Source: Epithemia pelagica
Taxonomy: Eukaryota > Protista > Bacillariophyta
DNA length: 64,000 nt
Reading direction: 5' to 3'
Assembly: GCA_946965045.2 (NCBI GenBank)
Contig: CAMPTO020000005.1
Coordinates: forward strand, 1 to 64,000
This document shows, in pieces, positions 7,928-64,000 of the stretch (its first letter is position 1; the number at the start of each line of letters is the position of its first letter). Under the pieces are notes generated by a model that saw only the letters and a program-made list of their open reading frames with translations, had not been told where the DNA came from and ran no database searches. The position numbers were made by a program, and so were the translations under genes.

Positions 7928-7941
7928 TGAGACTGTTAATC
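7928..7941 (-). promoter_or_regulatory. Primer-binding site complementary to a tRNA-Asn(GUU) anticodon arm
   Basis: Plus strand TGAGA-CTGTTAA-TC abuts the 5' LTR and has the layout of tRNA positions 27-40 with a GTT anticodon. Confidence 0.65.
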
Positions 7942-15593: not shown

Positions 15594-15765
15594 TAATTCC
15601 CTTGTGTCTGGCCGTCCTTTCGCGTCGGGCGCCCGGCTTGTCGGGAGAATGCCTCGTCGGGAACACGTCTCGACGTGCATTCGCCCTCCTCGACGTGTTC
15701 CCTCCTCGTCATTCTACCCTTCGCGCCGGGCGACCCTCCTTAAAAGGACTAGACACCGGAAATTA
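15594..15765. mobile_element. MITE-like cassette X (copy 1)
   Basis: Ends taattcccttgtgtc...gacaccggaaatta are inverted. Direct repeat of 15967-16142. Confidence 0.65.
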
Positions 15766-15771
15766 ATATCA

Positions 15772-15961
15772 CTAACTCCATACCAGACTGTGTAGGTAGT
15801 TCGTCTCACATTTTTATACTACAGTAGGAATTTTTTGTACGACCGGGAAGTAGTTTCGTGCGAGTCGCGCGGTTTCCCTCTCGTGTGTGACACTTGTGTG
15901 ACACTTTGTGACATGGCTTCCAGGAATTTCTCACTACCTACACAGCTTGATAGGGAGTAAG
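15772..15961. mobile_element. 190-bp non-autonomous derivative of the Crypton-like element
   Basis: Left IR ctaactccataccagactgtgtaggtagt and right IR actacctacacagcttgatagggagtaag match the ends of 11195..15588. Confidence 0.75.
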
Positions 15962-15966
15962 TTTAC

Positions 15967-16142
15967 TACTTCCCTGTGTCTGGCCGTCCTCTCGCGTCGG
16001 GCGCGCCCGGCTTGTCGGGAGAATGCCTCGTCGGGAACAATTGTCTTGTCGGGCGTGCGCCCTCCTCGATCATTGCCCTCCTCGTCATGCTACCCTCCGC
16101 GCCGGGCGGTCCCTCCTTGAAAGGACTCAACACCGGGAAGTA
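15967..16142. mobile_element. MITE-like cassette X (copy 2)
   Basis: tacttccctgtgt...acaccgggaagta inverted ends. Similar throughout to 15594-15765. Confidence 0.65.
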
Positions 16143-16279
16143 TTAATACTATTTCGTCAAGTCAGTCGTGCTTCCAGTCCGCACCCATCAGAGCAGCAGC
16201 AAGGAGCAGCAAACCCAAGAACCTCTCACAATACAGTGTGTCTTGATTCTCATAAATTCTGCAGTCAACGTTCGGAACC

Positions 16280-17329
16280 ATGACAATGAAGCTACAAAAA
16301 CAAGCATGGCAGTCGGGGCTTGTCCTTTTGGACGAGAAAGCAGAATGGAATGAAAACGATTGGCCTCCTCTTGTGGGTGGATGGCGTTCGCTTCATGCTA
16401 CTGTCGTACTCGATCATACCGTCGTCGTGTTGGGTGGATATACAGATTTGCAAGGCAATGTTAATTCCGTTCTTATATTGAATTTAGCAGACAAACCAGA
16501 CAAGAGGTGGCGAGAAGGGCCATCCATGAACAAGAAACGTTCTGGACATGCCGCTGTTGTGTGCAATGGCAGCGTCTACGTGATGGGAGGAGACAGAAAT
16601 GGACCTTCAAGCTTGGATTGTATGGAACAGATTGGCGCCAACGATTTGGTCCAACCATTGTTGACATCAACCAGCACGCATGAGCGTCATTGGACGACAT
16701 TGAAATGCCGATTATCAATGGGACGATATGGGTGTTGTGCCGTTACGGTGAAGAATCGATACATTGTTGTACTGGGGGGATGGGATGGAGGGCACAGGTT
16801 GTCGTCGGTGGATATCATTGATACCAGCAATCACACTGTCATAGCAGGACCAAGTATGAACGTTCCACGTATATGGTGTGCCAGTGCGGTCGTTGGCCAC
16901 CGCATCTTTGTCGTTGGAGGCTCGACAGTAGAGTATTTGGACTTTGGAAAGCCTAGTGACAATGCGGAGAGAAACGACACTCTGTCTACATTCATTTCCT
17001 CCTTGTCTGGTTGGACGACTCACTCTGATCTGGTACTTTCCAACCCACGATATTCTTGTGCAGTGGTTGCTGTTGGATCTTGTCTGGTGGTGGCGGGAGA
17101 CCATCGAACCGTGGAAGTCTTGGATACGCGTCACAACCGAATGTGGAATCTCCCACCATTCCGTAATGGCCATCATAACTGCAGTATGGTGACGGTTGCC
17201 AATCAAGTTGCCGTCATTGGTCGATGGCGTAATCCATCCTGTGCAACATTACCACTCATGGACAAGAATACGTGGTGCTTTCGTCGACTCTGTGAGCAGC
17301 CTCTGATTGACTCTGTGGGCAGCCTCTGA
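16280..17329 (+). CDS. Kelch-repeat beta-propeller protein, paralogue 1 (349 aa)
   Basis: Repeated vvlGG...v...W...psM..kR.ghaavv motifs. Intronless ORF. Confidence 0.9.
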   Translation: MTMKLQKQAWQSGLVLLDEKAEWNENDWPPLVGGWRSLHATVVLDHTVVVLGGYTDLQGNVNSVLILNLADKPDKRWREGPSMNKKRSGHAAVVCNGSVYVMGGDRNGPSSLDCMEQIGANDLVQPLLTSTSTHERHWTTLKCRLSMGRYGCCAVTVKNRYIVVLGGWDGGHRLSSVDIIDTSNHTVIAGPSMNVPRIWCASAVVGHRIFVVGGSTVEYLDFGKPSDNAERNDTLSTFISSLSGWTTHSDLVLSNPRYSCAVVAVGSCLVVAGDHRTVEVLDTRHNRMWNLPPFRNGHHNCSMVTVANQVAVIGRWRNPSCATLPLMDKNTWCFRRLCEQPLIDSVGSL

Positions 17330-19077
17330 TTGAATGGTATCATGGTCTGGAAAGATCGGGCAAGGAAGATGTCAATGATACATCCTGCACCATCTCGTAT
17401 TCGACTCTTAAACGATTGAGGACCTTTGATTACTGTGATTGTGACAAAGGGGAAGATGGCAGTTGAAGTATACAACAGGTTACACATCCAAGAGCCCGGA
17501 AACGGTCGTTATTCTCTCATACAAAACAGGAGATCTTGGCAGTTCTTAATTGCGTTGTGAATTATATAGGTTAAGGGATTAGAGAGCAACTCCTAGCATG
17601 TTTGAAGCACCACCTTATAGCATATGACCGCACGGGAATTTCTTTCTGATGCGATGGCGTTTGTGACAGTCGAACCCATCCGCCATGGTCAGCTATATCC
17701 TTGTGGCAAAAATTTTAGATGTTACAGCGTCTGCTTTTCTTTGAGAAGTACCTAGCGGATGTCTGGCAACTACTCTTGGGTGGATGGCCATGGTACCGCT
17801 CCTCTCTTTGGTGTTGAATACTCTCTGGTCTTGAATAGAATGAATCATCTTTCGATTAAAGACGACGGTCTTTGATGGTCTCGTTGCATCTTTTGGACGT
17901 GGAAAGAGCAGCCTGAATTGTGTCCCTCTACAAGTGGCACACAAGGAACCAGTAACGCCGTGGTCCTGACCTGAAAGGTGTGGGACAGCGCCACTATACT
18001 GTGGTCATTAGTTAAGCCGGTGCTATCTGGTGACAGCAAGGAGCTTTGCACGAGAAAAAAGTCGTCATCACAGTGGACATGGATTGGAAGCTGTGACAGC
18101 AACGACAGGATCTGACAGCACCACAGTTTGTTGTCAGTTTTGCGATCGGAGCAGTGTAACCAATTCTCCTCTGATTCTTGATGTGGCACTTGTTGCGATC
18201 GTCATGAAGGGCTCATCCTGTCTTGTTTCTTGCTTTGTGATACTGTTGCCACGACACGTTTTGCTGATGTGGTGTGTTTGTGTTTTGTTCACTGTTGTTG
18301 TTTCGTCCAGAGCCCCAGCGACAATGAATGTCGCTTATTCTTGGCAGATACATGATCACTTCTCTGTATCTCTTTCTGCTTGTGAAATAGCTGATAGCAA
18401 AAGGGATATCACCCGACCAGACTATGGAGCAAAATGCATCCGATCCATCCAGCGTTCTTTTGTCCCGCTTTTCATCGACAAAAGAGAACTTCGAAATAGT
18501 AGAGCCATTCCGGTGCCATATTCCAGTATAAAAGTTTTCCAAAAGTCATTTTTCCAGCACTTGAGCGGTTTCCACCGAGTACCAGTCATATGGCAACTTC
18601 ACCAACATTCTATACCAGCTCGTCCACTCCAAGAATGACTGATTGTCATATTTTTCGTCTCCAACGTGAATTTCCTATCCAGAGGGTAGAAGATGCTCCG
18701 AGCCATCGGTGGGTTTTGTGCTTCCTGAGGACTTCATTTTGTTGGCTAGATAACGTTCTTATCAACTCGAGAGGTAATTGAGAGCAGGATAATCCACCAA
18801 AGCAAGTAACAGGAAAATTCCCCTCTCGCTTCGCAAAGGCCGGAAAAATATCTGTGCGTCTTTGCTGCAGATGGGCACATTTCTACTCCACGACTGCAGG
18901 CGGCTTTTTCACGCCATTTTTGTTCCGCCAACACAAAACCAAACCTTCTTCTGCACGATTGACAGATGATCCGTAGAGATGATCCATTGCACCCACCGTT
19001 AGCTTCTCTTGGTTGACTGTCTGGATGGAACAGAGACGCGAAAGATACACGCAAGATATTACGCAAGATTTGGGTGC

Positions 19078-19346
19078 GATTGGGGGGGTACCTTTGTTCG
19101 TCCGTCATCCGAATGGAAAAAATTGTCTCGTATTTTTTATTTTCTCCCAAAGCGCCAGCCAGGTGATATCGCCAGCCTCCCTTCGATCGTTCGAAATCGA
19201 CGCGCCGGTCACGCCTTGTATTGCTGGCACATGGGCCAAGGATCGTCTCACTTTTCGAAAGACGACCATGAGCACTGACACCAAAAACCAAAAGAAAACC
19301 ACCCAGATAACCGTATGGACAGCAGACGGGAGGTACCCCCGCAATC
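19078..19346. mobile_element. Possible ~270-bp MITE
   Basis: gattgggggggtacc (19078-19092) and ggtacccccgcaatc (19332-19346) form a 15-bp IR with one mismatch. The segment is absent from the homologous 24520-24560 region. No clean TSD. Confidence 0.4.
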
Positions 19347-20189
19347 GGAGGGATATAGCACGAAGATATTAGGATTTGGGGGTGAACGCAAGAAAGGGTG
19401 GGGGAGCGTCTCTTCTACGCCGCCCCCCGATCTATTGTCTGTCCTCCGTACGTGATGGACGTCCTTTCATCTCTGCTGGTCGACCGTTTGCATGCATCAT
19501 ACAGCAAGCCATGTCAATGTCAGAAGCATGGAACAGACCTGTTATGGATTATGGATGGTGCTATACAAATTGAAAGTCACTGGGCATCATGAATCACGAC
19601 GCGCAGTCGCAGGGGTGGACCAGTCACTCGACGGTGAACACGACGACGACGAGAGACCCGCACAAATTTCCAATTCACCGGTAGTCAGTCGCCCACAATG
19701 AGACGACGTGCCAGGTGCCAGCGGTTCATTCACCGAGAACCCCCATAAAATTCTTTCGTTCTCGTTATGGCAAGCAACCAAGTTGCATTCAAGGGCTTTC
19801 TGATATCAGGGTTACACAAACTTCATGATCGCAACCAATCAAGTTGCGTTCAAGGGCTTTCTGATATCCTTGTTTTTGCTGTGCAATGGGGGAGTGTCCC
19901 CAATCATCGAGGCACAGTGTCCTTCTGAAGGGTACGACTATGCGACTGGAGCTCTGCGTTCTGTAATTTTTGACATGTCCACAGGCAACGACACTGCATT
20001 CTTGGCGGAAGACGTCCAAGTCCGCCTACCGTACAACATTGACAATGTTCAGCCATCCACCAGAACTCAAATTCACACGGACACCAAGTCCTTTTCAAAC
20101 ATTGTCAAGCTATCTGAGAGCTATTCGGTCGACTCTCAGACACAGTGGTCATCATCTGGTGGGTATGCAGACATTCTACAAGGTCTAGC

Positions 20190-20687
20190 TGGGGAGCGTT
20201 GCCTGCAGAAAGGGTTTCACTCCTCTTGGCATTGGTGAATGAGGAACGGAGAGCAGAGGAGCTGCTGTTCATTCAACACAAGCGGGGTTTTGGAATAATA
20301 CGTCCAAGACTTGGAGCAGATTATCAAGGCCGACAGAGGCCCGAACACCTGGCAGATTATTGTCAGACAATCGCTTTCTCCTGTTTCTCCTCTGATAGTG
20401 CACATCAGGCAAAAATCCGGATCCGACAAAGGTCGTTCCCGGTCCTGCTTCCAAACAGTAAGATTCCAATGTGTACATGACAGGAAGAGCTCCCACGAAT
20501 TATTGACAACAAAGTGAAGCTCAGCAAAGTCATTCAAGGTCGCGTAGTCAAGGGCGTGTAGTTCGAAGAAGCGGCGGAACAACATCATCGCTACAGTTAC
20601 CAAATAGGCGAGAGCAGAGGCAAGCGACTCCAAATACCAGGGACGGGCATCATGATTTCCAACGTGGAGATCAGCGTCGCTACACAT
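20190..20687 (-). pseudogene. Degenerate RING-HC-like gene fragment
   Basis: IICSKSW..YSKTPLVLN...LLCSP.L...*NPFCRQ resembles a decayed C3HC4 ring ending CPFCR, with an in-frame stop. Confidence 0.35.
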
Positions 20688-22135
20688 CTACACATTGAAT
20701 GGCCAAGTGCTTGGCCGTGGTCATAAAGGGAAGCTACATGTTGGTCAATTTGCTCTCGTTGAAGTCAAAAGTTGTCGTCTCGTCGTTTTTTTGTACATGG
20801 GTGGGCAATAACACACAGCAAAAGAGAACGAGGCAGAAACCTCTGCTTTCCACCCCTCGACGGCGGACGTGTGAGTCGGTACAATCTATACTGCACAGAA
20901 AAAGGATGTCGAACGAGTTCGTAACCTGTGCTGTAACAGTATCTTTGTTGGCGCGAGTTCTTTCGATCGACCTCCACATGGCACCAAAAGAAAGTGCGGT
21001 ATCGAGAATCGTGATGACCATACACATACACCAAATCCGACAGCCGACACACATAAAGAAATGAGAACAAGAAAAAGAGACGCAGAATAGAAGAAGAAGC
21101 AGAGGTCGTCTAGGCTGGACGGAAGACTTTTGAGGACTTTTCACACTATGGACGACGAAGTACTACCGACACGTGTGTTGGTGCTCCTCCTCCGCAAATC
21201 CCAACACCAACTCAAGTATAGAATACCATTCCAACAGCAATGGCATTCGTTCGCTCCGATACAGGGCAAGAAATGCAGCACAAGAAGGTGCAAGTGCAAT
21301 TGACGGTGCACCACCAATGGCTCGTCGTGGAGGCTATACTGCTATCCAAACCAAGCACAGCGACAAGGTAAAACATAGTGGCCAATCACGAAACTCCTTG
21401 TCATGAAATGTTCATCCATTGCAGGCAGCACATGCATGGGTCCTTGAGGACAAACCTCCCACTGCACTGCGAGTTGCGCAACACTACCCATGCCATGGCC
21501 AGTGCATTGTGTTCGTCGTGTTGAAGCAACAAGAGAAAGTGTCTGCTTACCCTCCGCGAGCTGATTCTTCACCCACTACTCGGTATTTGTCAGCAAGTAC
21601 CAAGACTGTGGAACCTGTGCTGTTATATGCCAATGCCAAGCCGATCATGACGGCAATGCTCTTCACCGCCCAACTACAACGAGACTGACACAAATGGCAA
21701 CAACAACCGGAACCTTCATTGCTGTTACGAGCATTCTCCTTTCATGCATCAAGGCGAGCAACGTGGTGGTCCCTTTTGACACCCTTCTTGCAATACAACA
21801 GCGACTCTTCTTGTCTCTCGAAAGTTTTGAAACGAATCGCACCAATCCTGTCATGTCATTATGTTGTATGTCGAGGTGTTTTCGGTATCCAAAAACTTCC
21901 ACGTTATTCCGAATCAATACACTATACCTATTAGGATGCGAAGTCTCTTTCAGTGTGTGACTACGGTCGCGCGACGAAAGCTACCCATCGCTCGTGTGTT
22001 TCGATCCATCACATTTCGTCAAGTGAGTCGTGATTTCAGTCCGCACCCATCAGAGCAGCAGCAAACCCAAGAATCTCTCACAATTCAGTGTCTCGATCCG
22101 CATAAATTCAGCAGTCACCGTTTGGAGTCATCACC

Positions 22136-48656: not shown

Positions 48657-49213
48657 TGTTCTAGGTGACATAGTCAGACTAGCGGGTGTGAGATATCCTA
48701 GTAGAGCTAGGGATCCTAGGAAGATATCGCACATGTGCCGAAAGGCCACAAGAACCGGTGGCTCCAGGGCGGGTTAGGGGTATTTTTAAAGCTAGAGAAC
48801 TTTACGGGACCTTCTCGGAGACTGGTTGCTGAAAAGCTCGTTCCAAGAATTGTGTGCTCCTCACGTTCGAAGTCTGAGGAGAATGACTGAGCTGGGACGT
48901 GCAGGCTTGATGGGGGGAACGCCTGGCGGGTGGCTTGCGCACTCTAGCCATCTGCTCAGAGAACTAAGAGTTCCACCTGCGAGACACACCAACCCATTAC
49001 AAACAACGTGCGGTACCCCTATATGGATCCCGCCATACGTGTCGCCACGTTCCATTCACGGTTCGCGTTCTTGACACTGAGACATGAATCTTGCGCCATC
49101 TGGCTGTTCCTCCTCCAGTCATTTCTCGTCGCACGTGGCACTGTGGATTCCTCATTCCCCCTAATTCCTCGTAATTCCTAAAGATCACAATTTTTTTACC
49201 GTGCTAGTTTACA
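48657..49213 (+). repeat. Candidate 5' LTR of the gypsy element (start uncertain, partner LTR beyond the window)
   Basis: Ends ...gtttaCA followed by TGG (49214), ~135 bp before the gag ATG. A TG start at 48657 or 48734 cannot be resolved. Confidence 0.35.
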
Positions 49214-49348
49214 TGGGTATGGCACTCTGATCAGAAGCTCGAAAACTTCCCCCAACACTCTTTCACCATAACCACCTGCCGTTCTTTGGCCGATCCTCGT
49301 TGATCTCATCATCCTTTGATTCCTTTCCTTTCCTTTTGCAGTCTCATC

Positions 49349-49942
49349 ATGAGCACAGGATCTTCCCTCGTCTCCCTTGCGGATGTTCAACGCTTCCAAA
49401 AGCGCTTTGATCAAGCCTCATCTTCAGATTCTTCCTCTGCTCTTTCCACCCTCAAGATGAAAGACGACGACGATGACAAGTACTACGTCCGTCTCTTGCC
49501 ATTCCGCGATGGCGTGGACGAAGAGCCCTCGAATCTCTTCCTGTGTGTCCTCCATTTTGTTGACAAGGTCAAGATCTCCGGTCATCCAGAGCCCTTTGCT
49601 GCCTGTTGCACCTACTTTCCCCGTGTTACCACAAGTCTCGTAGCGGACAAGTTTCATGATGCATTCCAGGCCTTGCCTGATGGCGCCGACCTCGATGAGG
49701 CGTGTTTCAAACGGTTGATTGCTACGATCTTCGAACCCAAGTTGACGGTTTCCGAAGTCAATGCCTTTCGGGCACACCTTCTTAGCGGTCCTCGCAAGCC
49801 ACCTGATATGACCGTGGATATCCATTATCACACCCTCCAGAAGATTTCCAACGGTCTCCGTTACTTGTCTAACGACAACGCTGTCCAAACCCTCACTGAC
49901 GATGAGTTGAAGCAAGCCTTCTATCTCGGCTCCCCTGTTGCT
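49349..49942 (+). mobile_element. gag: Ty3/gypsy gag, N-terminal part
   Basis: RKPPDMTVDIHYHTLQKISNGLRYL...LTDDELKQAFYLGSPVA matches the diatom gypsy gag core. It is cut off by the satellite. Confidence 0.75.
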
Positions 49943-52900
49943 CATAGGCTCTGAACTCGTGTATCCCAGACCAAAAGTCTTGTTGTAGACCATACAAGTG
50001 TCGCGTTGTCGATGTCCCAAGCTTCCATGGACATGGAGCAAAGACGTTGTCGATGTCCCAAATTACCATGGACATGGAGCAAAGACTCTCTTCTATAACT
50101 CGAATCGCTCCAAATATTGGTAGAGACACTTGGGGTATCATAGACATCGACGTCATAGGCTCTGAACTCGTCTATCGCGGACCAAAAGTCTTGTTGTAGA
50201 CCATACCGGTCTTGCGTTGTCGTTGTACCAAATTACCATGGACATGGAGCAAAGACACCCTTCTATAACTTGAATCGCTCCAAATTTCGGTAGAGTTACT
50301 TGGGGTATCATAGGAATGGACGTCATAGGCTCTGAACGCGATAAGCATGGATGTCATTGGCTCTGAACTCGTCTATCGCGGACCAAAAGTCTTGTTGTAG
50401 ACCATACCGGTGTCGTGTTGTCGATGTCCCAAACTTCCATGGACATGGAGCAAAGACACCCTTCTATAACTTGAATCGCTCCAAATTTCGCTAGAGACAC
50501 TTGGGGTATCATAGGCATGGATGTCATAGGCTCTGAACTCGTCTATCGCGGACCAAAGGTCTTGTTGTAGACCATACCAGTGTCGCGTTGTTGATGTACC
50601 AAACTTCCATGGTCATGGAGCAAAGACAGCCTTCTATAACTTGAATCGCTCCAAATTTCGCTAGAGACACTTGGGATATCATAGGCATGGATGTCATAGG
50701 CTCTCAACTCGTCTATCGCGGACCAAAAGTCATGTTGTAAACCATACCGGTCTTGCGTTGTCGTTGTACCAAATTACTATGGACATGGAGCAAAGACACC
50801 CTTCTATAACTTGAATCGCTCCAAATTTCGCTAGAGACACTTGGGGTATCATAGGCATGGATGTCATAGGCTCTGAACTCGTCTATCGCGGACCAAAGGT
50901 CTTGTTGTAGACCATACCAGTGTCGCGTTGTCGATGTACCAAATTACCATGGACATGGAGCAAAGACACCCTTCTATAACTTGAATCGCTCCAAATTTCG
51001 CTAGAGACACTTGGGATATCATAGGCATGAATGTCATAGGCTCTGAACTCGTCTATCGCGGACCAAAAGTCTTGTTGTAGACCATACCAGTGTCGCGTTG
51101 TCGATGTCCCAAATTACCATGGACATGGAGCAAAGACTCTCTTCTATAACTCGAATCGCTCCAAATATTGGTAGAGACACTTGGGGTATCATAGGCATGG
51201 ATGTCATAGGCTCTGAACTCGTGTATCGCGGACCAAAAGTCTTGTTGTAGACCATACCGGTCTTGCGTTGTCGTTGTACCAAATTACCATGGACATGGAG
51301 CAAAGACACCCTTCTATAACTTGAATCGCTCCAAATTTCGGTAGAGTTACTTGGGGTATCATAGGAATGGACGTCATAGGCTCTGAACGCGATAAGCATG
51401 GATGTCATTGGCTCTGAACTAGTGTCGCGTTGTCGATGTCCCAAGCTTCCATGGACATGGAGCAAAGACGTTGTCGATGTCCCAAATTACCATGGACATG
51501 GAGCAAAGACTCTCTTCTATAACTCGAATCGCTCCAAATATTGGTAGAGACACTTGGGGTATCATAGGCATGGATGTCATAGGCTCTGAACTCGTGTATC
51601 GCAGACCAAAAGTCTTGTTGTAGACCATACAAGTGTCGCGTTGTCGATGTCCCAAACTTCCATGGACATGGAGCAAAGACACCCTTCTATAACTTGAATC
51701 GCTCCAAATATTGGTAGAGACACTTGGGGTATCATAGACATGGATGTCATAGGCTCTGAACTCGTCTATCGCGGACCAAAAGTCTTGTTGTAGACCATAC
51801 CGGTCTTGCGTTGTCGTTGTACCAAATTACCATGGACATGGAGCAAAGACACCCTTCTATAACTTGAATCGCTCCAAATTTCGGTAGAGTTACTTGGGGT
51901 ATCATAGGAATGGACGTCATAGGCTCTGAACGCGATAAGCATGGATGTCATAGGCTCTGAACTCGTCTATCGCGGACCAAAAGTCTTGTTGTAGACCATA
52001 CCGGTGTCGTGTTGTCGATGTCCCAAACTTCCATGGACATGGAGCAAAGACAGCCTTCTATAACTTGAATCGCTCCAAATTTCGGTAGAGACACTTGGGG
52101 TATCATAGGCATGGATCTCATAGGCTCTGAACTCGTCTATCGCGGACCAAAAGTCTTGTTGTAGACCATACCGGTCTTGCGTTGTCGTTGTACCAAATTA
52201 CCATGGACATGGAGCAAAGACACCCTTCTATAACTTGAATCGCTCCAAATTTCGCTAGAGACACTTGGGGTATCATAGGCATGGATGTCATAGGCTCTGA
52301 ACTCGTCTATCGCGGACCAAAGGTCTTGTTGTAGACCATACCAGTGTCGCGTTGTCGATGTACCAAATTACCATGGACATGGAGCAAAGACACCCTTCTA
52401 TAACTTGAATCGCTCCAAATTTCGCTAGAGACACTTGGGATATCATAGGCATGAATGTCATAGGCTCTGAACTCGTCTATCGCGGACCAAAAGTCTTGTT
52501 GTAGACCATACCAGTGTCGCGTTGTCGATGTCCCAAATTACCATGGACATGGAGCAAAGACTCTCTTCTATAACTCGAATCGCTCCAAATATTGGTAGAG
52601 ACACTTGGGGTATCATAGACATCGACGTCATAGGCTCTGAACTCGTGTATCGCGGACCAAAAGTCTTGTTGTAGACCATACCGGTCTTGCGTTGTCGTTG
52701 TACCAAATTACCATGGACATGGAGCAAAGACACCCTTCTATAACTTGAATCGCTCCAAATTTCGGTAGAGTTACTTGGGGTATCATAGGAATGGACGTCA
52801 TAGGCTCTGAACGCGATAAGCATGGATGTCATTGGCTCTGAACTAGTGTCGCGTTGTCGATGTCCCAAGCTTCCATGGACATGGAGCAAAGACGTTGTCG

Positions 52901-55900
52901 ATGTCCCAAATTACCATGGACATGGAGCAAAGACTCTCTTCTATAACTCGAATCGCTCCAAATATTGGTAGAGACACTTGGGGTATCATAGGCATGGATG
53001 TCATAGGCTCTGAACTCGTGTATCGCAGACCAAAAGTCTTGTTGTAGACCATACAAGTGTCGCGTTGTCGATGTCCCAAACTTCCATGGACATGGAGCAA
53101 AGACACCCTTCTATAACTTGAATCGCTCCAAATATTGGTAGAGACACTTGGGGTATCATAGACATGGATGTCATAGGCTCTGAACTCGTCTATCGCGGAC
53201 CAAAAGTCTTGTTGTAGACCATACCGGTCTTGCGTTGTCGTTGTACCAAATTACCATGGACATGGAGCAAAGACACCCTTCTATAACTTGAATCGCTCCA
53301 AATTTCGGTAGAGTTACTTGGGGTATCATAGGAATGGACGTCATAGGCTCTGAACGCGATAAGCATGGATGTCATAGGCTCTGAACTCGTCTATCGCGGA
53401 CCAAAAGTCTTGTTGTAGACCATACCGGTGTCGTGTTGTCGATGTCCCAAACTTCCATGGACATGGAGCAAAGACACCCTTCTATAACTTGAATCGCTCC
53501 AAATTTCGGTAGAGACACTTGGGGTATCATAGGCATGGATCTCATAGGCTCTGAACTCGTCTATCGCGGACCAAAAGTCTTGTTGTAGACCATACCGGTC
53601 TTGCGTTGTCGTTGTACCAAATTACCATGGACATGGAGCAAAGACACCCTTCTATAACTTGAATCGCTCCAAATTTCGCTAGAGACACTTGGGGTATCAT
53701 AGGCATGGATGTCATAGGCTCTGAACTCGTCTATCGCGGACCAAAGGTCTTGTTGTAGACCATACCAGTGTCGCGTTGTCGATGTACCAAACTTCCATGG
53801 TCATGGAGCAAAGACAGCCTTCTATAACTTGAATCGCTCCAAATTTCGCTAGAGACACTTGGGATATCATAGGCATGAATGTCATAGGCTCTGAACTCGT
53901 CTATCGCGGACCAGAAGTCTTGTTGTAGACCATACAAGTGTCGCGTTGTCGATGTCCCAAATTACCATGGACATGGAGCAAAGACACCCTTCTATAACTT
54001 GAATCGCTCCAAATATTGGTAGAGACACTTGGGGTATCATAGGCATGGATGTCATAGGCTCTGAACTCGTGTATCGCAGACCAAAAGTCTTGTTGTAGAC
54101 CATACAAGTGTCGCGTTGTCGATGTCCCAATTTTCCATGGACATGGAGCAAAGACACCCTTCTATAACTTGAATCGCTTCAAATATTGGTAGAGACACTT
54201 GGGGTATCATAGACATCGACGTCATAGGCTCTGAACTCGTCTATCGCGGACCAAAAGTCTTGTTGTAGACCATACCGGTCTTGCGTTGTCGTTGTACCAA
54301 ATTACCATGGACATGGAGCAAAGACACCCTTCTATAACTTGAATCGCTCCAAATTTCGGTAGAGTTACTTGGGGTATCATAGGAATGGACGTCATAGGCT
54401 CTGAACGCGATAAGCATGGATGTCATTGGCTCTGAACTCGTCTATCGCGGACCAAAAGTCTTGTTGTAGACCATACCGGTGTCGTGTTGTCGATGTCCCA
54501 AACTTCCATGGACATGGAGCAAAGACACCCTTCTATAACTTGAATCGCTCCAAATTTCGGTAGAGACACTTGGGGTATCATAGGCATGGATGTCATAGGC
54601 TCTGAACTCGTGTATCGCAGACCAAAAGTCTTGTTGTAGACCATAACGGTCTTGCGTTGTCGTTGTACCAAATTACCATGGACATGGAGCAAAGACACCC
54701 TTCTATAACTTGAATCGCTCCAAATTTCGCTAGAGACACTTGGGGTATCATAGGCATGGATGTCATAGGCTCTGAACTCGTCTATCGCAGACCAAAAGTC
54801 TTGTTGTAGACCATACCGGTCTTGCGTTGTCGTTGTACCAAACTTCCATGGACATGGAGCAAAGACAGCCTTCTATAACTTGAATCGCTCCAAATTTCGC
54901 TAGAGACACTTGGGATATCATAGGCATGAATGTCATAGGCTCTGAACTCGTCTATCGCGGTCCAAAAGTCTTGTTGTAGACCATACCAGTGTCGCGTTGT
55001 CGATGTCCCAAATTACCATGGACATGGAGCAAAGACTCTCTTCTATAACTCGAATCGCTCCAAATATTGGTAGAGACACTTGGGGTATCATAGGCATGGA
55101 TGTCATAGGCTCTGAACTCGTGTATCGCAGACCAAAAGTCTTGTTGTAGACCATACAAGTGTCGCGTTGTCGATGTCCCAAACTTCCATGGACATGGAGC
55201 AAAGACACCCTTCTATAACTTGAATCGCTCCAAATATTGGTAGAGACACTTGGGGTATCATAGACATGGACGTCATAGGCTCTGAACTCGTCTATCGCGG
55301 ACCAAAAGTCTTGTTGTAGACCATACAGGTCTTGTGTTGTCGTTGTACCAAATTACCATGGACATGGAGCAAAGACACCCTTCTATAACTTGAATCGCTC
55401 CAAATTTCGGTAGAGTTACTTGGGGTATCATAGGAATGGACGTCATAGGCTCTGAACTCGTGTATCGCGGACCAAAAGTCTTGTTGTAGACCATACCGAT
55501 GTGGCGTTTTCGATGTCCCAAACTTCCATGGACATGGAGCAAAGACACCCTTCTATAACTTGAATCACTCCAAATATTGGTAGAGACACTTGGGATATCA
55601 TAGGCATGGATGTCATAGGCTCTGAACTCGTCTATCGCGAACCAAAGGTCTTGTTGTAGACCATACCAGTGTCGCGTTGTAGATGTACCAAACTTCCATG
55701 GACATGGAGCAAAGACACCCTTCTATAACTTGAATCGCTCCAAATTTCGCTCGAGACACTTGGGATATCATAGGCATGGATGTCATAGGCTCTGAACTCG
55801 TGTATCGCGGACCAAAAGTCTTGTTGTAGACCATACCAGTGTCGCGTTGTCGATGTACCAAACTTCCATGGTCATGGAGCAAAGACACCCTTCTATAACT

Positions 55901-58440
55901 TGAATCGCTCCAAATTTCGCTAGAGACACTTGGGATATCATAGGCATGGATGTCATAGGCTTTGAACTCGTCTATCGCGGACCAAAAGTCTTGTTGTAGA
56001 CCATACCAGTGTCGTGTTGTCGATGTCCCAAACTTCCATGGACATGGAGCAAAGACACCCTTCTATAACTTAAATCGCTCCAAATTTCGCTAGAGACACT
56101 TGGGGTATCATAGGCATGGATGTCATAGGCTCTGAACTCGTGTATCCCAGCCCAAAAGTCTTGTTGTAGACCATACAAGTGTCGCGTTGTCGATGTCCCA
56201 AGCTTCCATGGACATGCAGCAAAGACACCCTTCTATAACTTGAATCGCTCCAAATATTGGTAGAGACACTTGGGGTATCATAGACATGGACGTCATAGGC
56301 TCTGAACTCGTCTATCGCGGACCAAAAGTCTTGTTGTAGACCATACCGGTCTTGCGTTGTCGTTGTACCAAATTACCGTGGACATGGAGCAAAGACACCC
56401 TTCTATAACTTGAATCGCTCCAAATTTCGGTAGAGTTACTTGGGGTATCATAGGAATGGACGTCATAGGCTCTGAACGCGATAAGCATGGATGTCATAGG
56501 CTCTGAACTCGTCTATCGCGAACCAAAGGTCTTGTTGTAGACCATACCAGTGTCGCGTTGTAGATGTACCAAACTTCCATGGACATGGAGCAAAGACACC
56601 CTTCTATAACTTGAATCGCTCCAAATTTCGCTCGAGACACTTGGGATATCATAGGCATGGATGTCATAGGCTCTGAACTCGTGTATCGCGGACCAAAAGT
56701 CTTGTTGTAGACCATACCAGTGTCGCGTTGTCGATGTACCAAACTTCCATGGTCATGGAGCAAAGACACCCTTCTATAACTTGAATCGCTCCAAATTTCG
56801 CTAGAGACACTTGGGATATCATAGGCATGGATGTCATAGGCTTTGAACTCGTCTATCGCGGACCAAAAGTCTTGTTGTAGACCATACCAGTGTCGTGTTG
56901 TCGATGTCCCAAACTTCCATGGACATGGAGCAAAGACACCCTTCTATAACTTAAATCGCTCCAAATTTCGCTAGAGACACTTGGGGTATCATAGGCATGG
57001 ATGTCATAGGCTCTGAACTCGTGTATCCCAGCCCAAAAGTCTTGTTGTAGACCATACAAGTGTCGCGTTGTCGATGTCCCAAGCTTCCATGGACATGCAG
57101 CAAAGACACCCTTCTATAACTTGAATCGCTCCAAATATTGGTAGAGACACTTGGGGTATCATAGACATGGACGTCATAGGCTCTGAACTCGTCTATCGCG
57201 GACCAAAAGTCTTGTTGTAGACCATACCGGTCTTGCGTTGTCGTTGTACCAAATTACCGTGGACATGGAGCAAAGACACCCTTCTATAACTTGAATCGCT
57301 CCAAATTTCGGTAGAGTTACTTGGTGTATCATGGGAATGGACGTCATAGGCTCTGAACTCGTGTATCGCGGACCAAAAGTCTTGTTGTAGACCATACCGA
57401 TGTGGCGTTTTCGATGTCCCAAACTTCCATGGACATGGAGCAAAGACACCCTTCTATAACTTGAATCACTCCAAATATTGGTAGAGACACTTGGGGTATC
57501 ATAGGCATGGATGTCATAGGCTCTGAACTCGTGTATCGCGGACCAAAAGTCATGTTGTAGACCATACCGGTCTTGCGTTGTCGTTGTACCAAATTACCAT
57601 GGACATGGAGCAAAGACACCCTTCTATAACTTGAATCGCTCCAAATTTCGCTAGAGACATTTGGGATATCATAGGCATGAATGTCATAGGCTCCGAACTC
57701 GTCTTTCGCGGACCAAAAGTCTTGTTGTAGACCATACCGGTGTCGCGTTGTCCATGTCCCAAACTTCCATGGACATGGAGCGAAGACAGCCTTCTATAAC
57801 TTAAATCGCTCCAAATATTGGTAGATACACTTGGCGTCTCGTTGTAGGCCATACCAGTATCGCGTTTTCGTTGTCTCAACCTTCCATGAGGGGTATGGAG
57901 CAACAACACCCTTCTATGACTTGAAGCGCTCCAAAATTCTGTACAGACACTTGCGGTATCGTAGGCATGGACGTCATAGGCGCTGAATTCGTCTATCATT
58001 GACGTAAATTATTGTTGTAGACCACACCGGTGCGGTGTTGTCGTCGTCCCAATCTTCCATAGACTTTTTGGAACAAAGACATTTTTCTTTTCATCTAATC
58101 GACCCAGGTATTGGTACATATCCTCGGGATATCATAGCCATGTGTACCATAGGCTCTGATCTCATGTGCCGTCAAGACAAAGGCTTGCAATAGATTAGAT
58201 CGGTTTGGCGTTGTCGTTGTGCCAAAGTTGTATGGACATGGAGCAAAGAGATCCTTCTCTTCATGGAATCGGTCCAGATTTTGGAAGAGACCCATAGTGT
58301 CTCATTTTTATGGATACCATAGGATCTGATCTCGTGATCTGTGACGAGAAAGGCTTGCAATAGACCATACCGATATAGCGTTGGCCTTGACATTGTCCAA
58401 AAATTTCGTACGCTCATTTCATCCTCCATTGATTCGTATG
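49943..58440. repeat. 170-bp tandem satellite, ~50 monomers, ~8.5 kb, with higher-order blocks
   Basis: tcataggctctgaactcg recurs every 170 bp (e.g. 54591 vs 54761). Duplicated blocks at 1424-bp and 881-bp offsets. Monomers diverge after ~57800. Confidence 0.97.
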
Positions 58441-58618
58441 ACAAAGCAAACAAGACTCAGAAATTCTTAGCGTTATTTGAATTTTTCCCCATAAAAACGA
58501 TAAGAACTGAGAGATAGTCAGGATCAGTTGTTTTCTCTGAAGTACATCTTCTTCCAACCGCAAACAGAAATCCTCGCACCATTACTCTTCAAGAAGACCG
58601 TTCGATATCGTATAAAAG

Positions 58619-59494
58619 ATGGAAGACTCGTCTTGGTTGAATACTGTTGCAATATGGAATCTCATCTCGAATACACGATTTGATGTTGAAACTTCGTTTT
58701 GTCTTCGTAGCAGTGATAGGAATGTTGTTCTCACTGAAGATGTTGCAGCGGCAGCCGAAGGAATCAAAAACGAATTCAAGGATCTTGTAGACAAGATTAT
58801 TAATCACGAGGGACGACTTGATGTGATTTCCATTATGAATGGTAATAAGGAGGGATATACAGAAGAGCACCAGTGTCAGATGGGCACATGGGCAGACAGA
58901 CCGGAATTCCTTGACGGACCCTTCATCTGGAAACAAAACTTCCTCGAGACATGTCTTGTTTGCGGTAAATTCACCTGTAATCAACAGGTAACAAGATACA
59001 CATGCAAACATTGTTTCCGTCCTTTACAAGTACCTGGGTCGTCTTCATCTTGTGATACCACTTGTGCAAAGACTCCCTGTACTTCATCCATGAACATGTC
59101 CTTCGTATGGGAGTTCTGTATGACTTTAAGAGAGGCATTCCAAGCGTGGTTTGACTTCCACAAGTTTGGAAAAAACAGAAAGATTCCCTTTTTTGAATAT
59201 ATCCCAGCCGAAACTTGTGGCATCTTGACAAAAACGGTCGGTAAAGTATGGAGAGAAAAATTGGAGCCTTATTACAACGAGGATACCAAGTGGCGTAGTC
59301 CATCTCATTTCATTCACACCGAGAAACAATGGGCATTGTGGCTGATTTCTTCACCACCTGGTTGCTCCTTTCGCAACTATATGCCTATTTTTACTGCATG
59401 TTATCACATAGCGCAGGAAAATCCAAAGAAACACGCTGCTGGTGTACCACACCAGAGTGCTCGTAAGAAGCAAAAGACGTGGAATGCTCCTTGA
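58619..59494 (+). CDS. Hypothetical 291-aa protein with a Cys-rich Zn-finger-like segment
   Basis: Intact ORF. CLVCGKFTC...YTCKHC...C..C, plus a basic C-terminus (RKKQK). Confidence 0.6.
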   Translation: MEDSSWLNTVAIWNLISNTRFDVETSFCLRSSDRNVVLTEDVAAAAEGIKNEFKDLVDKIINHEGRLDVISIMNGNKEGYTEEHQCQMGTWADRPEFLDGPFIWKQNFLETCLVCGKFTCNQQVTRYTCKHCFRPLQVPGSSSSCDTTCAKTPCTSSMNMSFVWEFCMTLREAFQAWFDFHKFGKNRKIPFFEYIPAETCGILTKTVGKVWREKLEPYYNEDTKWRSPSHFIHTEKQWALWLISSPPGCSFRNYMPIFTACYHIAQENPKKHAAGVPHQSARKKQKTWNAP

Positions 59495-59533
59495 ATTTGT
59501 TTTTCCTTGGTGATGAATGCATCCAGAAAGAAT

Positions 59534-61147
59534 TTATAATGTTCCGCTACGAATGCCTTGAACCGTTTTGGTTATACCATGGTCCTCTCTTGTTTCGTTG
59601 ACAGTTGCATTCATAGACCTGGAACTTACTGCCCAAAACCAACTAATAGTGTCGTTCTTCATGTTCCCATCTGTATGTTGTCTTTGTTTGTGTATTGACG
59701 TTCCATGCCGGATCACACGTCCATCCCATAGAACCGAAACCCCATGAAATAGTTGTATACAAAGACCATGGTATGTAGTACCATCATATTCCACAAGAAT
59801 ATTCGGCAAAACAAAGAACCAATTTTGGGAGTCACCTGGGATTGTCTCTGTCCAGATTGCGAATGAAACAGAACCATCGTGAACATCATAGTGTGTCGTG
59901 TTCATGAGGTTCAAACTCAGGGTAATGGCTGAGGTCATACCTCCGACTCTTCCTCCGAATTCACTAGGCATTTCTTCGCCAGCTGAATCTTCTAGATACC
60001 GGAATGTTGGAATCACCCCAGGATATTCGCGTTCACAGAACCTTTTTGCCGCTGTACTTATTTTCGGCAGTATCATCGATAATGTCTTGTCCTTTGTAAA
60101 TAATTTCTCGGAAACGAAAGTAGAACCGTTTCCTCTTGTCGCAGTATTACCAACAGTAGTCATAGATCCTAAGTCTCCCTTATTACATCTGGCATTGGCC
60201 GCCTTTCTCAGAGACCCAGTACGTGTAAATTCCCTTGCTCTGTGGTGTAATAGGTCCAACAACGTCTGGTCTTTCCGTAACAGAGATGTCACTCGAATGT
60301 AACTAAGTGACTCTGGTCTCCCATCATTTCGGCGTGTCCGAACAATGAAAGTAATGTTTCCCCGAATACGATGGTCGTATACCAGTGGCCTTGGGTGTGT
60401 ACCGGACGACATTTGCAACCATAGGTTTCGATGCAAAGCACCACTAACATATCTCCGACTCCCTTTCTTATCTGAGTCATTCCTGGTTATAATCAGCCTT
60501 GTTCGATATTGTTCCCGTGACATGTGATGTGTCATCGACTGTTTATTCCCTGGCTTTTCGATCTTTCCCTTGTCATCGAGGTACACGTCAGGAGGTAAAA
60601 GTGGGCTCCCATCCTCCACATCGGACCATTGGTAACATTCCTTCACAGTTTTGTCATTATTAGTAAGATGTTCACCCCAATCTAGACTCCAACAACGATG
60701 AATCTTTTTCAAGAATGCATTACTTGCAGGTTGGCCATCTTTGTGTCGCAGACGTAACCAAGACAACGGTAGTGGGACTGATGACGATGTGATGTTGGAC
60801 GACCTTGATAGTTCTTGAAATTGACGCACACATGTATAAAAAACCCCAGCCAAAGGGAAGAGGATAATAATATCTCTGAAGAGGTGATCATTTTCGTCAA
60901 GACATAAGTTTTTGTTAGTCCGAATCATCATGACAGGATCTTTGAATATAGAGGACGACACATGTGTTGTCTTTTTCCTGATTTCTCTATATCTTGTCCT
61001 CGACAAGGTACATTCCAATATGAATGCATTGTGGATCGTTTTAGTTACAAGACCCACCGGGATTTGAGTAACAATCATAGGACAACATTCTGGTATAATG
61101 TTCGAATGACTGACAACGTCATCTCTTGTCTCCACAACATCATCCAT
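59534..61147 (-). CDS. TET/JBP-like 2OG-Fe(II) dioxygenase (true N-terminus may extend upstream via introns)
   Basis: LMNTTHYDVHD (HxD at 59885-59893), FFVLPN, IQLFHGVSVLWDGRVIRHGTS (distal His 59705-59707) have the double-stranded beta-helix spacing of TET/JBP enzymes. Confidence 0.7.
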   Translation of the reverse strand: MDDVVETRDDVVSHSNIIPECCPMIVTQIPVGLVTKTIHNAFILECTLSRTRYREIRKKTTHVSSSIFKDPVMMIRTNKNLCLDENDHLFRDIIILFPLAGVFYTCVRQFQELSRSSNITSSSVPLPLSWLRLRHKDGQPASNAFLKKIHRCWSLDWGEHLTNNDKTVKECYQWSDVEDGSPLLPPDVYLDDKGKIEKPGNKQSMTHHMSREQYRTRLIITRNDSDKKGSRRYVSGALHRNLWLQMSSGTHPRPLVYDHRIRGNITFIVRTRRNDGRPESLSYIRVTSLLRKDQTLLDLLHHRAREFTRTGSLRKAANARCNKGDLGSMTTVGNTATRGNGSTFVSEKLFTKDKTLSMILPKISTAAKRFCEREYPGVIPTFRYLEDSAGEEMPSEFGGRVGGMTSAITLSLNLMNTTHYDVHDGSVSFAIWTETIPGDSQNWFFVLPNILVEYDGTTYHGLCIQLFHGVSVLWDGRVIRHGTSIHKQRQHTDGNMKNDTISWFWAVSSRSMNATVNETREDHGITKTVQGIRSGTL

Positions 61148-61187
61148 GTCTTGGCCCTTGTTCCAATTGAGAAGGGGTAGCAACACA

Positions 61188-61520
61188 GCAATCCAACAGG
61201 GTCTTGGTCGATGGAAATGGAGGGGTGAAGGAAGAGGGTGCACCAACTTGGTGTCTTTTTGCCCTTTGTTCAATTGAATCCTCACCAATCCGACCGTTCA
61301 GATCGTTGAAAATGGTCTTCTGGGATAATAGGAGGGAAGAAGCAGCGGCAATCCAGCAATCCAACCAGTTTTGGTCGATGGAAATTGATGGGAGAATGAA
61401 ATGGGTGCACCAACTTGGTGTCTTCGCCCTTTTTCAAACAGAACCACCAATCCAGTCGTTCAGAGCGTTGAAAATTGTCTTGTGGGATGATAGGAGGGAA
61501 GAAATAGTTGCCAAACAGCG
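61188..61520. repeat. Two diverged ~168-bp tandem copies upstream of the dioxygenase ORF
   Basis: gcaatccaac...tggtcgatggaaat...gggtgcaccaacttggtgtctt occurs at 61188 and 61356. Confidence 0.8.
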
Positions 61521-62040
61521 ATCACATGGTTGGGTTTTCATGGAAACAGAAGAAAATGATTAGTGGGCATATAGGAAAACGACAAAACGAACTCTCACTG
61601 TTGTCTTGTCGACTTGGCTTACCTAGCACCTTTCCAATTTGAAAAAGGAAATGATTCTCTTTGTGTTCGCCTGTTTGTTGTAGCTGTTGTTGTTGTTGTT
61701 GCTGTTGTGTTGTTGTTGTTGTTGTTGTTGCTGCTGCTGTGTGTTTTTTGGGGCGTTGGGGGTTGGTGTGAGTTGGATGAGGCACTCTATGACTCTATAG
61801 TCAAAAAGTGATCACAAAAGTGGGAGAGTATATCTTTTGTGTGGTTGTTGTGTGAGGAAAATCTAATTTTCAGCGTTCTTCTGTGATTTTGTGTCCATTG
61901 TTCTTCGTATGTCACTGTGACGTGATTTGGTGGTGGAGGAGAAATTTGTGGGTCGCTTTTGGAGTTTACGTGCGACTGGAATACTAGGTGTTATATGTGT
62001 AGCTAGTAGTTAGGTATCTAGGCAAAGGTTAGGCTCTGTG

Positions 62041-62222
62041 CACGCGTTTCCACATACAATAAACATGCTCACGCGGGTGTCAACACGTTTCACGCGTTGT
62101 CTACACGTTTCACGCGCATTCACGCGCAATCTGGAGCGCCACGCGCTTCGTACGCGCCAAATCCGCGTGATCCGTGTTCTGGGGGTGCTGCACGCGCCTA
62201 TTGGGCGTGTGTCACGCGCCTG
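62041..62222. repeat. Cluster of about ten CACGCG/ACGCG motifs at the right end of the insert
   Basis: gcacgcg, tcacgcg (several), ccacgcg, tacgcg, ccgcgtg within ~180 bp. Confidence 0.75.
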
Positions 62223-62265
62223 TTGGTGGAATTCCAGTCACTTATCTTCAAAAAACCTCCTTAGA

Positions 62266-63198
62266 CGCAACGAGTTCAAGACGGCCAATCCCTTGGTTGC
62301 ATATTTGGTGAACCATTTCAACGTCACCGACCTCCTTCATGCGATGCGTGGCTATCAACGGGCCTCCCAAGAGAAGATGGCTGCCAATGCACAGTCCCAG
62401 GCCAAGTCCCGCAATCCTCGCGATGATTCCACTTCTCGTGGTTCTACGAAGCGTTTTCGCTCCTCTAATGGTGGCCGTGGCGGTCTCCGCGGCGGCAATC
62501 GCCAGTCTAATGGTGGACGTCAAGCGTCCGGTGATCGTCCCGTCAATGACGGCAATGCCTGTCCGTACAAGGACGCGATTCCTTCGCACGCCAATCATAC
62601 TTGGGCCAACTGCATCTACAACCCGCAGTCCTCCAATTTTAACCAAGAGCGTTTCAACGCCTTTCTTGCCCGTACCGGGTCTGGTCTTCGTACCCCTACT
62701 GGGTCTCACCCCAACAATGGTTCTCAGAACCAAGGCCGTAACGGCCAAGGCTCTCGTAGCCAGGGAACTCCCTCATCTGGAGGATCGCGCCCTATTGGTT
62801 CCAGTTGGGGCGCTGTTCCCCGTCGTTCTGGATCTGGCTCAGACCAGCATGCCTCTGAAGGCACCAACACAGGCGACAATCCACCGGTTGATCCGTTGTT
62901 GGCCGAGCCGTTGCCTTCTGTGCAAGACGCGGCCTATCGTGCTCGTCAACGTCCTCTCGCTGATACTCGTGATTGGTCGAGTCTCCGCAATGCCGATCAA
63001 ACGGTCCCCGGTATGTGCTCTTCTTCCTTTTTTACCTCATCCTCTCCGGATATTTCTCATCATCTTGATGTTCTTTTTGCTCAGCAATGTCACATCCAGA
63101 CTGGCCCTCCACAGGCTATGCCGGCCGAGAATGCCATCCTCAGGCCCCAATTCTCGAGGTCCGCGAACAATTGTTCAAGATCTACGGGCGTAACATAG
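62266..63198 (+). mobile_element. gag: Ty3/gypsy gag, C-terminal part with zinc knuckle
   Basis: RNEFKTANP continues ...LGSPVA(W). CPYKDAIPSHANHTWANCIYNP is a nucleocapsid-type knuckle. Confidence 0.75.
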
Positions 63199-64000
63199 AT
63201 ATCGCCCACATCTACGACTTGTCCTCCCCTGAAGGCAACGACGAATACTGTCGCTTCCCCTTGTCTTAAAAACTGTCCCAATCCTACGGATGCTGTCATC
63301 GCTGACATCGTTGATCCCAATAATGGTTTTTTATCTAACCTAGATCACTATGAAGATGTCTACTCATCTAGTTCTGTCTCTGACGCTCCTAGTTTATCTA
63401 GTCCCCTTTCGGTCGCTCCCTCTGAGCCTCCGTCTGTTCCCCTCACCATTTTGATGGCTCGGTCCATTGGTGGAGTCGAGAACACCGTCCCGTTGCGTGC
63501 CCTGCTCGATTCAGGCGCCGACAAGACGATCCTGCACGCGCGCTGTCTTCAGCCCGGCATGCATCCACGTGTAACCAATCGGTCTGTCAATACCACCATG
63601 GGTACGCGCGACCACGTCTCCGAGATTCTTCTCGAAGATTTGGTTCTCCCCGAGTTTTCTCGGACCAAACACATTTCATACCCCCTTTGGGCCGACATTT
63701 TTGATGCCCCCAATTGTCGTTATGACATCATTATTGGCCGCGATCTCTTGCGTCGCTTGGGCATTGTGCTCAATTTCAACACTGGTCTCACAACTTGGGA
63801 CTCAGTTGATGTCGCTATGCGCCACCGCGATTCATTCGCCACAGACCAGACATTCATGTCTCATTTCATCGACATCTTTGCCGACGATCCCATTATTGGT
63901 GACCAATTCCTCTTGGATTCGAACTACGTTCCTACGGATCTACAAGAGTTGATTGACAAACAGAATCATCTTACCGATGCCCAAAAGCAAGATCTTCTTG
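63199..64000 (+). mobile_element. pol: Gypsy pol start: aspartic protease, open to the window end
   Basis: Frame-1 translation LRALLDSGADKTIL...YDIIIGRDLLRRLGIVLNF. Missing from the ORF track because there is no stop in the window. Confidence 0.88.

Follow-up and report, generated by a model that had tools for sequence, protein, structure and literature searches.

A 64,000-nucleotide stretch of the genome of the diatom Epithemia pelagica (assembly GCA_946965045.2, contig CAMPTO020000005.1, positions 1 to 64,000, forward strand; hereafter the window) was found to carry a 12.3-kb insert in the gag gene of a Ty3/gypsy-like retrotransposon. With a probability of about 0.85, this insert is a dead, one-ended fragment of a giant, ~23-kb cut-and-paste DNA transposon of the Plavaka type that carries a TET-fold gene. 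In the coordinates used below the window is G000:C20:1-64000, and contig C20 is 79.8 kb long. The original prediction had described the 12.3 kb as a mobile unit with its own TET/JBP-type enzyme; the family does carry its own TET/JBP-fold enzyme, but the 12.3 kb is not a complete unit, being truncated on the left and internally deleted. The insert and its flanks were annotated in the window as listed here (TIR, terminal inverted repeat; ORF, open reading frame; aa, amino acids).

49007..49942, plus strand: Ty3/gypsy-like retrotransposon, 5' part, with the gag N-terminal half (ORF 49316-49954); 98% identity to L027/L028; host of the insertion
49943..57960, no strand: 170-bp tandem array of ~47 monomers with a 340-bp higher-order periodicity (Tandem Repeats Finder); internal component of the transposon
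58619..59494, plus strand: Cys-rich ORF of 291 aa (ORF call), a conserved cargo gene and paralogue of a 346-aa Cys-rich gene
59534..61147, minus strand: predicted TET/JBP-fold dioxygenase gene, N-terminally truncated, keeping approximately residues 126-662 of 662
61147..61148, no strand: junction of an internal deletion, 6.8 kb absent (reference positions 15243-22071; BLAST against a full copy, junction sequence compared)
61148..61560, no strand: remnant of a 105-bp array (repeat detection, alignment to a full copy)
61561..62267, no strand: right subterminal region with a (TTG)n tract, eight CACGCG motifs in the same orientation and a 9-bp TIR, CCTTAGACG (compared with 14 other right ends)
62268..64000, plus strand: gypsy gag and protease, continued; CA at 62268-62269 is the surviving right copy of a 2-bp target duplication

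Insertion site and right terminus

Foreign DNA inside the gag gene occupied window positions 49943-62267. Intact retrotransposon copies (L027 and L028) aligned to window 49007-49942 and 62266-64000 at 98% identity, with a gap of 3 bases between the two matches, in agreement with the earlier proposal that a single insert splits one gypsy gag; both halves matched the same copies. These uninterrupted gag copies also set the junction and placed the true right end of the insert at 62267, with the right TIR (CCTTAGACG) at 62259-62267 and a flank that opens with CA. The empty site in the intact copies reads gct-TGG-CG-CA-acg. In the window copy the left part of gag ends at gct, and the right TIR is followed directly by CA acg, so that TGGCG, five bases of gag, has been lost along with the left-hand copy of the target-site duplication (TSD). 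The loss had previously been taken for that of the Trp codon alone, an appearance that arises because the terminal CG of the TIR by coincidence mimics the CG of gag. The flank was classified as Ty3/gypsy-like because an intact copy encodes an 861-aa gag-protease ORF with a retroviral protease domain (RVP), and because reverse transcriptase and RNase H of the flanking element lie downstream at C20:64117-65217, just past the window.

The full-length family

The reference copy of the family, at G000:C16:3193774-3216965, measures 23,192 bp, and at least 14 left and at least 15 right ends of the family were located in the genome at 97-100% identity. Homology to the 14 right ends other than that of the window stopped at query positions 708-714 (window 62267-62273), these ends having one terminal sequence in common and flanks that differ. 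Left of the satellite, the other copies carry 8.8 kb of common sequence, and the true left end (C16:3193774) recurs in 14 loci. Full copies are bounded by 9-bp TIRs, CGTCTAAGG on the left and CCTTAGACG on the right. Matching 2-bp flanks were present in 10 of 11 two-ended copies (CG, CA, TA, AA, TG, TC, TG, TA, AG and TC), and flanking DNA differed among all 11, i.e. without the common flanks of a segmental duplication. Two-ended copies ranged from 7.9 to 25.9 kb and differed in array length and internal deletions. A complete element is organized in the following order.

Left half: left TIR CGTCTAAGG; three small minus-strand ORFs; Plavaka-like DDE transposase, ~1400 aa; 346-aa Cys-rich gene; 170-bp array
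Right half: 291-aa Cys-rich ORF; 662-aa TET-fold gene, minus strand; 1007-aa RING gene, minus strand; 105-bp array; right TIR

The RING finger of the 1007-aa ORF is C-terminal. In full copies the 105-bp array extends for ~3.3 kb and is followed by a subterminal region of ~1 kb with a CACGCG cluster.

The sole paired copy with unmatched 2-bp flanks was C17:1183544-1208881, with TG on the left and its reverse complement, CA, on the right. Recombination between two copies or an inversion is a possible source of the mismatch.

Ten or more loci contain a 3.2-kb core (window 58400-61600), with 97-99% identity. In other copies core query positions 1-2748 and 2748-3201 lie ~6.8 kb apart, and an internal deletion was therefore assigned to the window copy. 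Co-occurrence of the two window ORFs and the satellite, which had been put forward as a check on the mobile unit, was borne out: all three recur together in copies with common ends. There is next to no chance that the ORFs are single-copy host genes beside a host satellite instead of cargo, a case that had also been envisaged earlier, since 13 near-identical TET loci lie within elements that have TIRs, TSDs and differing flanks, and since the satellite is confined to element copies. All close genomic matches to the 170-bp array fell within copies of this family, and the array is not a general satellite of the genome. A Helitron, suggested by 3' ends that are conserved and 5' ends that vary, was rejected on the TIRs and 2-bp TSDs of the full copies, and LINE-like (long interspersed nuclear element) 5' truncation was ruled out by the gene orientations and the TIRs.

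Structure and history of the window copy

Alignment to the C16 reference copy gave, in order, the satellite, window 57836-61153, the 6.8 kb missing from the window, and window 61147-62268; the window copy thus keeps reference positions ~8.8-15.24 kb and 22.07-23.19 kb only. Together with the left TIR, the missing 8.8 kb on that side held the three small ORFs, the transposase gene and the 346-aa gene. The internal loss of 6.8 kb took away the N-terminal end of TET along with its promoter side, as well as the 1007-aa RING gene and the greater part of the 105-bp array. The only cargo gene left intact in the window copy is the 291-aa ORF. The truncated TET gene nevertheless retains the whole catalytic domain (H544, D546, D549 and H606). 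Its reading frame was called as a 584-aa minus-strand ORF (59534-61288), which converges on the 291-aa ORF with stops 39 bp apart; extensions of this ORF and of a 119-aa ORF within 61148-61560 are repeat artefacts. Degenerate 170-bp monomers continue beyond the array to ~58380. At 8.0 kb, the window array was the longest of the four 170-bp arrays measured, the other three being 3.0-3.8 kb, and its left edge at 49943 is a break point, not a terminus of the element. Of the 11 CACGCG sites in the window, eight fall in 62041-62213. The 170-bp array, the convergent ORFs and the CACGCG cluster of the original prediction were thus all recovered. Its statement that the insert has no transposase and no clear TIR or TSD held for the left TIR, the left TSD copy and the transposase, and failed for the right TIR at 62259-62267; transposase, paired TIRs and paired TSDs are missing from the window because the copy is truncated.

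The gag flanks are almost exactly contiguous, as for a clean insertion, and the right end is a genuine terminus, both of which would suit a complete non-autonomous unit of 12.3 kb mobilised in trans. Such a unit is nonetheless highly unlikely here: its left edge would lie inside a satellite monomer and lack a TIR, none of the other copies begins at that point, left ends elsewhere in the family lie 8.8 kb further left at CGTCTAAGG, and the target site has lost 5 bases and gained no 2-bp duplication.

For the truncated fragment favored here, the history would be as follows. The element would have inserted in the gypsy gag at TGGCG^CA with duplication of CA. A later loss would have removed the left 8.8 kb or more, TGGCG and the left CA, together with 6.8 kb internally. 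The likeliest route would be a transposase cut at the left end followed by abortive synthesis-dependent gap repair from a sister element, or by resection and end-joining; we infer that one-sided repair after such a cut would yield a one-ended, internally slipped copy of this kind. The window copy is no longer mobile.

Transposase and assignment to Plavaka

In the reference copy the transposase is split over two frames of 826 aa and 599 aa, and both frames were searched separately. An uninterrupted frame of 1410 aa was present in two copies (C16:3003923-3006604 and C3:3795398-3798079); the C16 element with this frame also has an intact TET frame and is, as judged by its reading frames, a candidate autonomous copy. 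At C16:2999074-3020561 a copy keeps both TET and RING intact. The 826-aa ORF aligned to P0157 over 567 columns (BLASTP, E 3e-33), and the aligned region of P0157 passed the Pfam Plavaka model PF18759 with a score of 38.9 bits (cut-off 26.3; 7.7e-10). The closest Atlas clusters to the transposase carry PF18759, and their commonest taxon is Bacillariophyta. A Plavaka-type carrier accords with the original prediction, which had named Plavaka among the carriers of TET genes.

Published Plavaka families have 2-bp or 2-3-bp TSDs and termini TGT..ACA (PlavakaA) or CATCA..TGATG (PlavakaB) (PMC12730594). The 2-bp TSD of the present family agrees with these (PMC12730594), the window copy having the right flank only. 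The termini are CGTCT..AGACG in the family of the window and CATCT..AGATG in a sister family described below; they resemble those of PlavakaB and are not identical to them.

In one copy (C3:487231-493872; L014), ~2-kb tandem duplications within the transposase gene result in an open frame of 2730 aa.

TET-fold protein

A homologue search with the TET-fold protein gave only three relatives, two of them without the catalytic end, and 615 came from HMMER run exhaustively over 1.84 billion representative sequences. In an alignment of 57 sequences H544 and D546 were conserved in 57 of 57 sequences, H606 in 56 of 57, and D549 and R445 in 55 of 57 each; the HxD...H iron triad is complete in the window copy. 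PF20515 (Tet-like 2OG-Fe(II) oxygenase) was matched by one of 56 aligned relatives (2.6e-4). Searches of PDB sequences with the TET-fold protein by phmmer and by profile returned nothing relevant, and Pfam searches of all window ORFs and the full-length cargo returned RING and weak zinc-finger matches only.

Residues 240-662 were modelled with AlphaFold 2 from the alignment (mean predicted local distance difference test score, pLDDT, 88); a single-sequence model of the 662 aa had a pLDDT of 34 and was not used. When this model was searched with Foldseek, human TET2 was ranked first (2.5e-11), followed by CMD1, CcTet and NgTET1. Z scores from VIA-align were 19.3 for TET2, 16.2 for CMD1 and 16.1 for both CcTet and NgTET1, then 11.6 for AlkBH3 and ~11 for FTO. 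According to the model, both fold and iron site of the protein are of the TET type, with membership resting on structure and not on a curated sequence model. The dioxygenase call of the original prediction is thereby upheld on fold (Z 19.3 to TET2) and on HxD...H, in the absence of a Pfam match.

The protein resembles TET2, NgTET1, CcTet and CMD1 in its double-stranded beta-helix fold with TET-specific elaborations (Z 16-19), in the HxD...H triad and in a conserved Arg, R445, which is the candidate proximal Arg for 2-oxoglutarate (2-OG), as counterpart of TET2 R1261. An Asp three residues after HxD is found in NgTET1 and CMD1, as in the present family. The differences lie in sequence identity (11-15%), in a probable Asn for the distal Arg and in a conserved WDGRxIRH before the distal His. 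An intact TET frame of 681 aa is kept in six copies. Genome-wide, at least 50 TET-fold loci were counted, in three or more subfamilies (97-100%, ~50% and ~35% identity to the window family).

Opposing evidence and support for the assembly

Several of the results argue against reading the insert as a fragment of a TET-carrying Plavaka transposon. A direct Pfam hmmscan of the transposase gave no match, and its assignment to Plavaka (CMC/EnSpm-related) is a transitive one, via P0157, by remote homology. The termini CGTCT..AGACG differ from both published pairs, CATCA..TGATG and TGT..ACA. Neither the 662-aa nor the 584-aa ORF matched PF12851 (Tet_JBP) or PF20515 in Pfam at E up to 1. In TET2 and NgTET1 the C5 carboxylate of 2-OG is held by an Arg that precedes the base-stacking aromatic by six residues (PMC7854593). 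The column six before the conserved F629 was occupied by Asn in 36 of 53 relatives (its equivalence to TET2 R1896 being taken from spacing, not from superposition), and no Arg column was present downstream of H606 in the TET-fold alignment. With Asn probably in place of the distal Arg, it is uncertain whether the enzyme uses 2-oxoglutarate in the canonical way. The element shows no CpG depletion, a result compatible with methylation and with its absence alike. The route of truncation given above is inferred.

A further opposing point concerns the left junction, for which the assembly is the sole support. No bridging contig for 49942/49943 was found among the listed contigs of public runs (short unitigs, which break at repeats), and loose ends of unitigs at this position continue into uninterrupted gag or into satellite. 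This gap in spanning contigs and the high-copy repeats on both sides would fit a misassembly of the left junction or of the internal deletion in C20, which is a small, repeat-rich subtelomeric contig. We consider misassembly improbable, given that misjoining by chance would not bring the satellite to within 5 bases of the very point in gag where the true right end of the element sits, 12 kb away, and that the unitigs of the public runs are broken at repeats in any case.

Cargo function

In diatoms, CG methylation is directed at transposons. At least six loci of the E. pelagica genome scored above the Pfam DNA_methylase cut-off as C5-DNA-methyltransferases. Among ten copies of the element, C-to-T or G-to-A differences affected 26 of 208 CpG positions vs 42 of 955 other C/G positions, a 2.8-fold excess per site (odds ratio 3.1, Fisher p = 5e-5). 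This excess fits some CG methylation of the copies.

By analogy, the TET-fold enzyme may modify 5-methylcytosine (5mC) on the DNA of the element itself and so counter CG methylation by the host, a role to which we give somewhat less than an even chance. The enzyme would act with the RING protein, to which it is fused in the sister family, and the Cys-rich paralogues, the internal arrays or the CACGCG repeats would be candidate targeting parts. The cargo could instead install another base mark, as CMD1 does with glyceryl-5mC and JBP with thymine hydroxylation, or act on RNA, in which case an element would be marked rather than demethylated; this reading is unlikely, though far from negligible. 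CMD1 is among the best structural matches (Z 16.2), and Asn probably stands where TET2 and NgTET1 have the Arg for the C5 carboxylate (PMC7854593). Set against this, HxDxxD and the candidate proximal Arg R445 match residues that TET-type enzymes use for cytosine recognition, and TET2 leads the structural matches by 3 Z units. A speculative and rather improbable extension is a self-targeting module in which the Cys-rich proteins would bind the arrays or CACGCG and recruit the RING-associated TET-fold enzyme, which, with no canonical distal 2-OG Arg anywhere in its family, would write a non-canonical base by an unusual, CMD1-like co-substrate chemistry.

Cys-rich genes and repeat arrays

The 291-aa ORF was 98-100% identical in eight of nine other copies and 95.9% identical in the ninth, and a Pfam search with it gave one weak zinc-finger match only. 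Its residues 128-262 also matched the sister-family homologue of the 346-aa gene, and the two Cys-rich genes were therefore considered paralogues. They flank the 170-bp array in full copies, the 346-aa gene on the left and the 291-aa gene on the right. The array occupies reference positions 8835-12477, and its first unit is formed by the 3' coding end of the 346-aa gene (L024:9100-9243). Since the first unit is the 3' end of a gene and the sister family has ~1.5 units, the satellite is taken to have arisen by tandem amplification inside the transposon.

The arrays had been described as CpG-rich. Observed/expected CpG was 0.85-0.89 for the 170-bp array, like the background of 0.8-0.9, and 0.33 for the 105-bp array (G000:C16 reference copy), and the description was abandoned. 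The CACGCG cluster was the only part that is locally CpG-dense; it is a subterminal repeat by position and a candidate transposase-binding site.

Sister family

A sister family was detected through satellite matches of 79-80% that adjoin TET genes. Its member at C11:199277-217281 (L051, L049 and L050) is 18,005 bp long, with the TIR CATCTAAGG and the TSD TA/TA. Gene order and 2-bp TSD are alike in the two families, and the TIR differs by one base. Protein identity between them was 57-60% for the transposase, 37% for the 346-aa protein, 31% for the 291-aa protein (E 2e-23) and 43% for the TET-fold protein. In the sister family RING and TET are joined in one frame of 1776 aa, whereas they are two genes in the window family, and the 170-bp sequence is present in ~1.5 units as against 20-47. 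The sister transposase is a single frame, and ~10 copies have frames of 1292 aa. TET, RING and Cys-rich genes and the 170-bp unit are conserved across both families, whose proteins are 43-57% identical, and this conservation lends indirect support to the VANC-like anti-silencing role suggested in the original prediction, which is plausible.

Comparison with known systems

TET-carrying fungal transposons were reportedly first noted by Iyer et al. in 2014. Some Plavaka families of Agaricales carry TET/JBP genes, for which escape from silencing by methylation has been proposed (Kojima 2025, PMC12730594). The diatom elements share with TET-carrying fungal PlavakaB the Plavaka-type transposase, the 2-bp TSD, a TET/JBP-fold passenger and the proposed silencing escape, and the short TIRs of the sister family (CATCT..AGATG) resemble the CATC type. 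They differ in host, in a far greater length (18-25 kb), in the termini CGTCT..AGACG and in extra cargo (RING, two Cys-rich paralogues and two tandem arrays), and their TET protein lies beyond PF12851 and PF20515.

Giant Plavaka elements of 17-19 kb in the red alga Bostrychia moritziana have accessory genes PAG1-3, with a 2OG-oxygenase protein beside tandem repeats, and the authors suggest that such an element acts on its own DNA by binding and modification, and cite an analogy to VANDAL (preprint, 10.1101/2025.02.11.637652). Compared by described features, the two systems are alike in giant size and in an oxygenase cargo that adjoins tandem arrays. In Bostrychia a ParB-like domain is joined to the oxygenase, which is accompanied by a 6mA-methylase/SET protein (6mA, N6-methyladenine); here the enzyme has its closest fold match in TET2, and its partners are the RING protein and the Cys-rich proteins. 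In the VANDAL/VANC system of Arabidopsis, a transposon-borne factor acts on the element's own repeats and causes loss of methylation. The likeness to it is one of concept only: there is no homology, and VANC is not an oxygenase.

No description of TET-carrying Plavaka elements from diatoms was found in the literature searched; TET homologues in Phaeodactylum and a lack of 5-hydroxymethylcytosine in Haslea have been reviewed (PMC9033121). With 50 or more TET-fold loci and two or more young families of giant Plavaka-type elements in which TET, RING and Cys-rich cargo is conserved, this genome is a tractable system in which to study possible self-editing of epigenetic marks by transposons. For annotation, an apparent insert without ends becomes a defined fragment, and family termini, a TSD and a candidate autonomous copy are supplied. 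The window itself adds a one-ended, deleted copy with an insertion history and a paired subtelomeric copy capped by telomere.

Genomic context

The paired copy of the same transposon lies at C20:65427-79814 (L025 and L026), 3.2 kb downstream in the same gypsy element, after RNase H. Its left TIR is intact and is followed by the left 8.8 kb, with a broken transposase, and by the satellite. Reference positions ~12-17.8 kb are deleted, with loss of the 291-aa gene, the TET gene and part of RING, and the copy ends in the 105-bp array where (TTAGGG)n starts at 79337. At this healed chromosome end, 3.2 kb of gypsy is thus bracketed by the two C20 copies, whose inner ends are in reverse order; the arrangement may be the trace of aberrant transposition and breakage. 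Of ~17 copies, five are no more than 35 kb from the end of a contig (C16, C7, C13 and C20), those on C16, C7 and C13 at distances of 2-35 kb, which suggests subtelomeric accumulation or local hopping.

Elsewhere in the window, positions 3330-8697 belong to a different repeat of high copy number (25 or more copies, 96-100%). The same repeat borders the C16 reference copy on both sides, and the reference copy is therefore nested in it.

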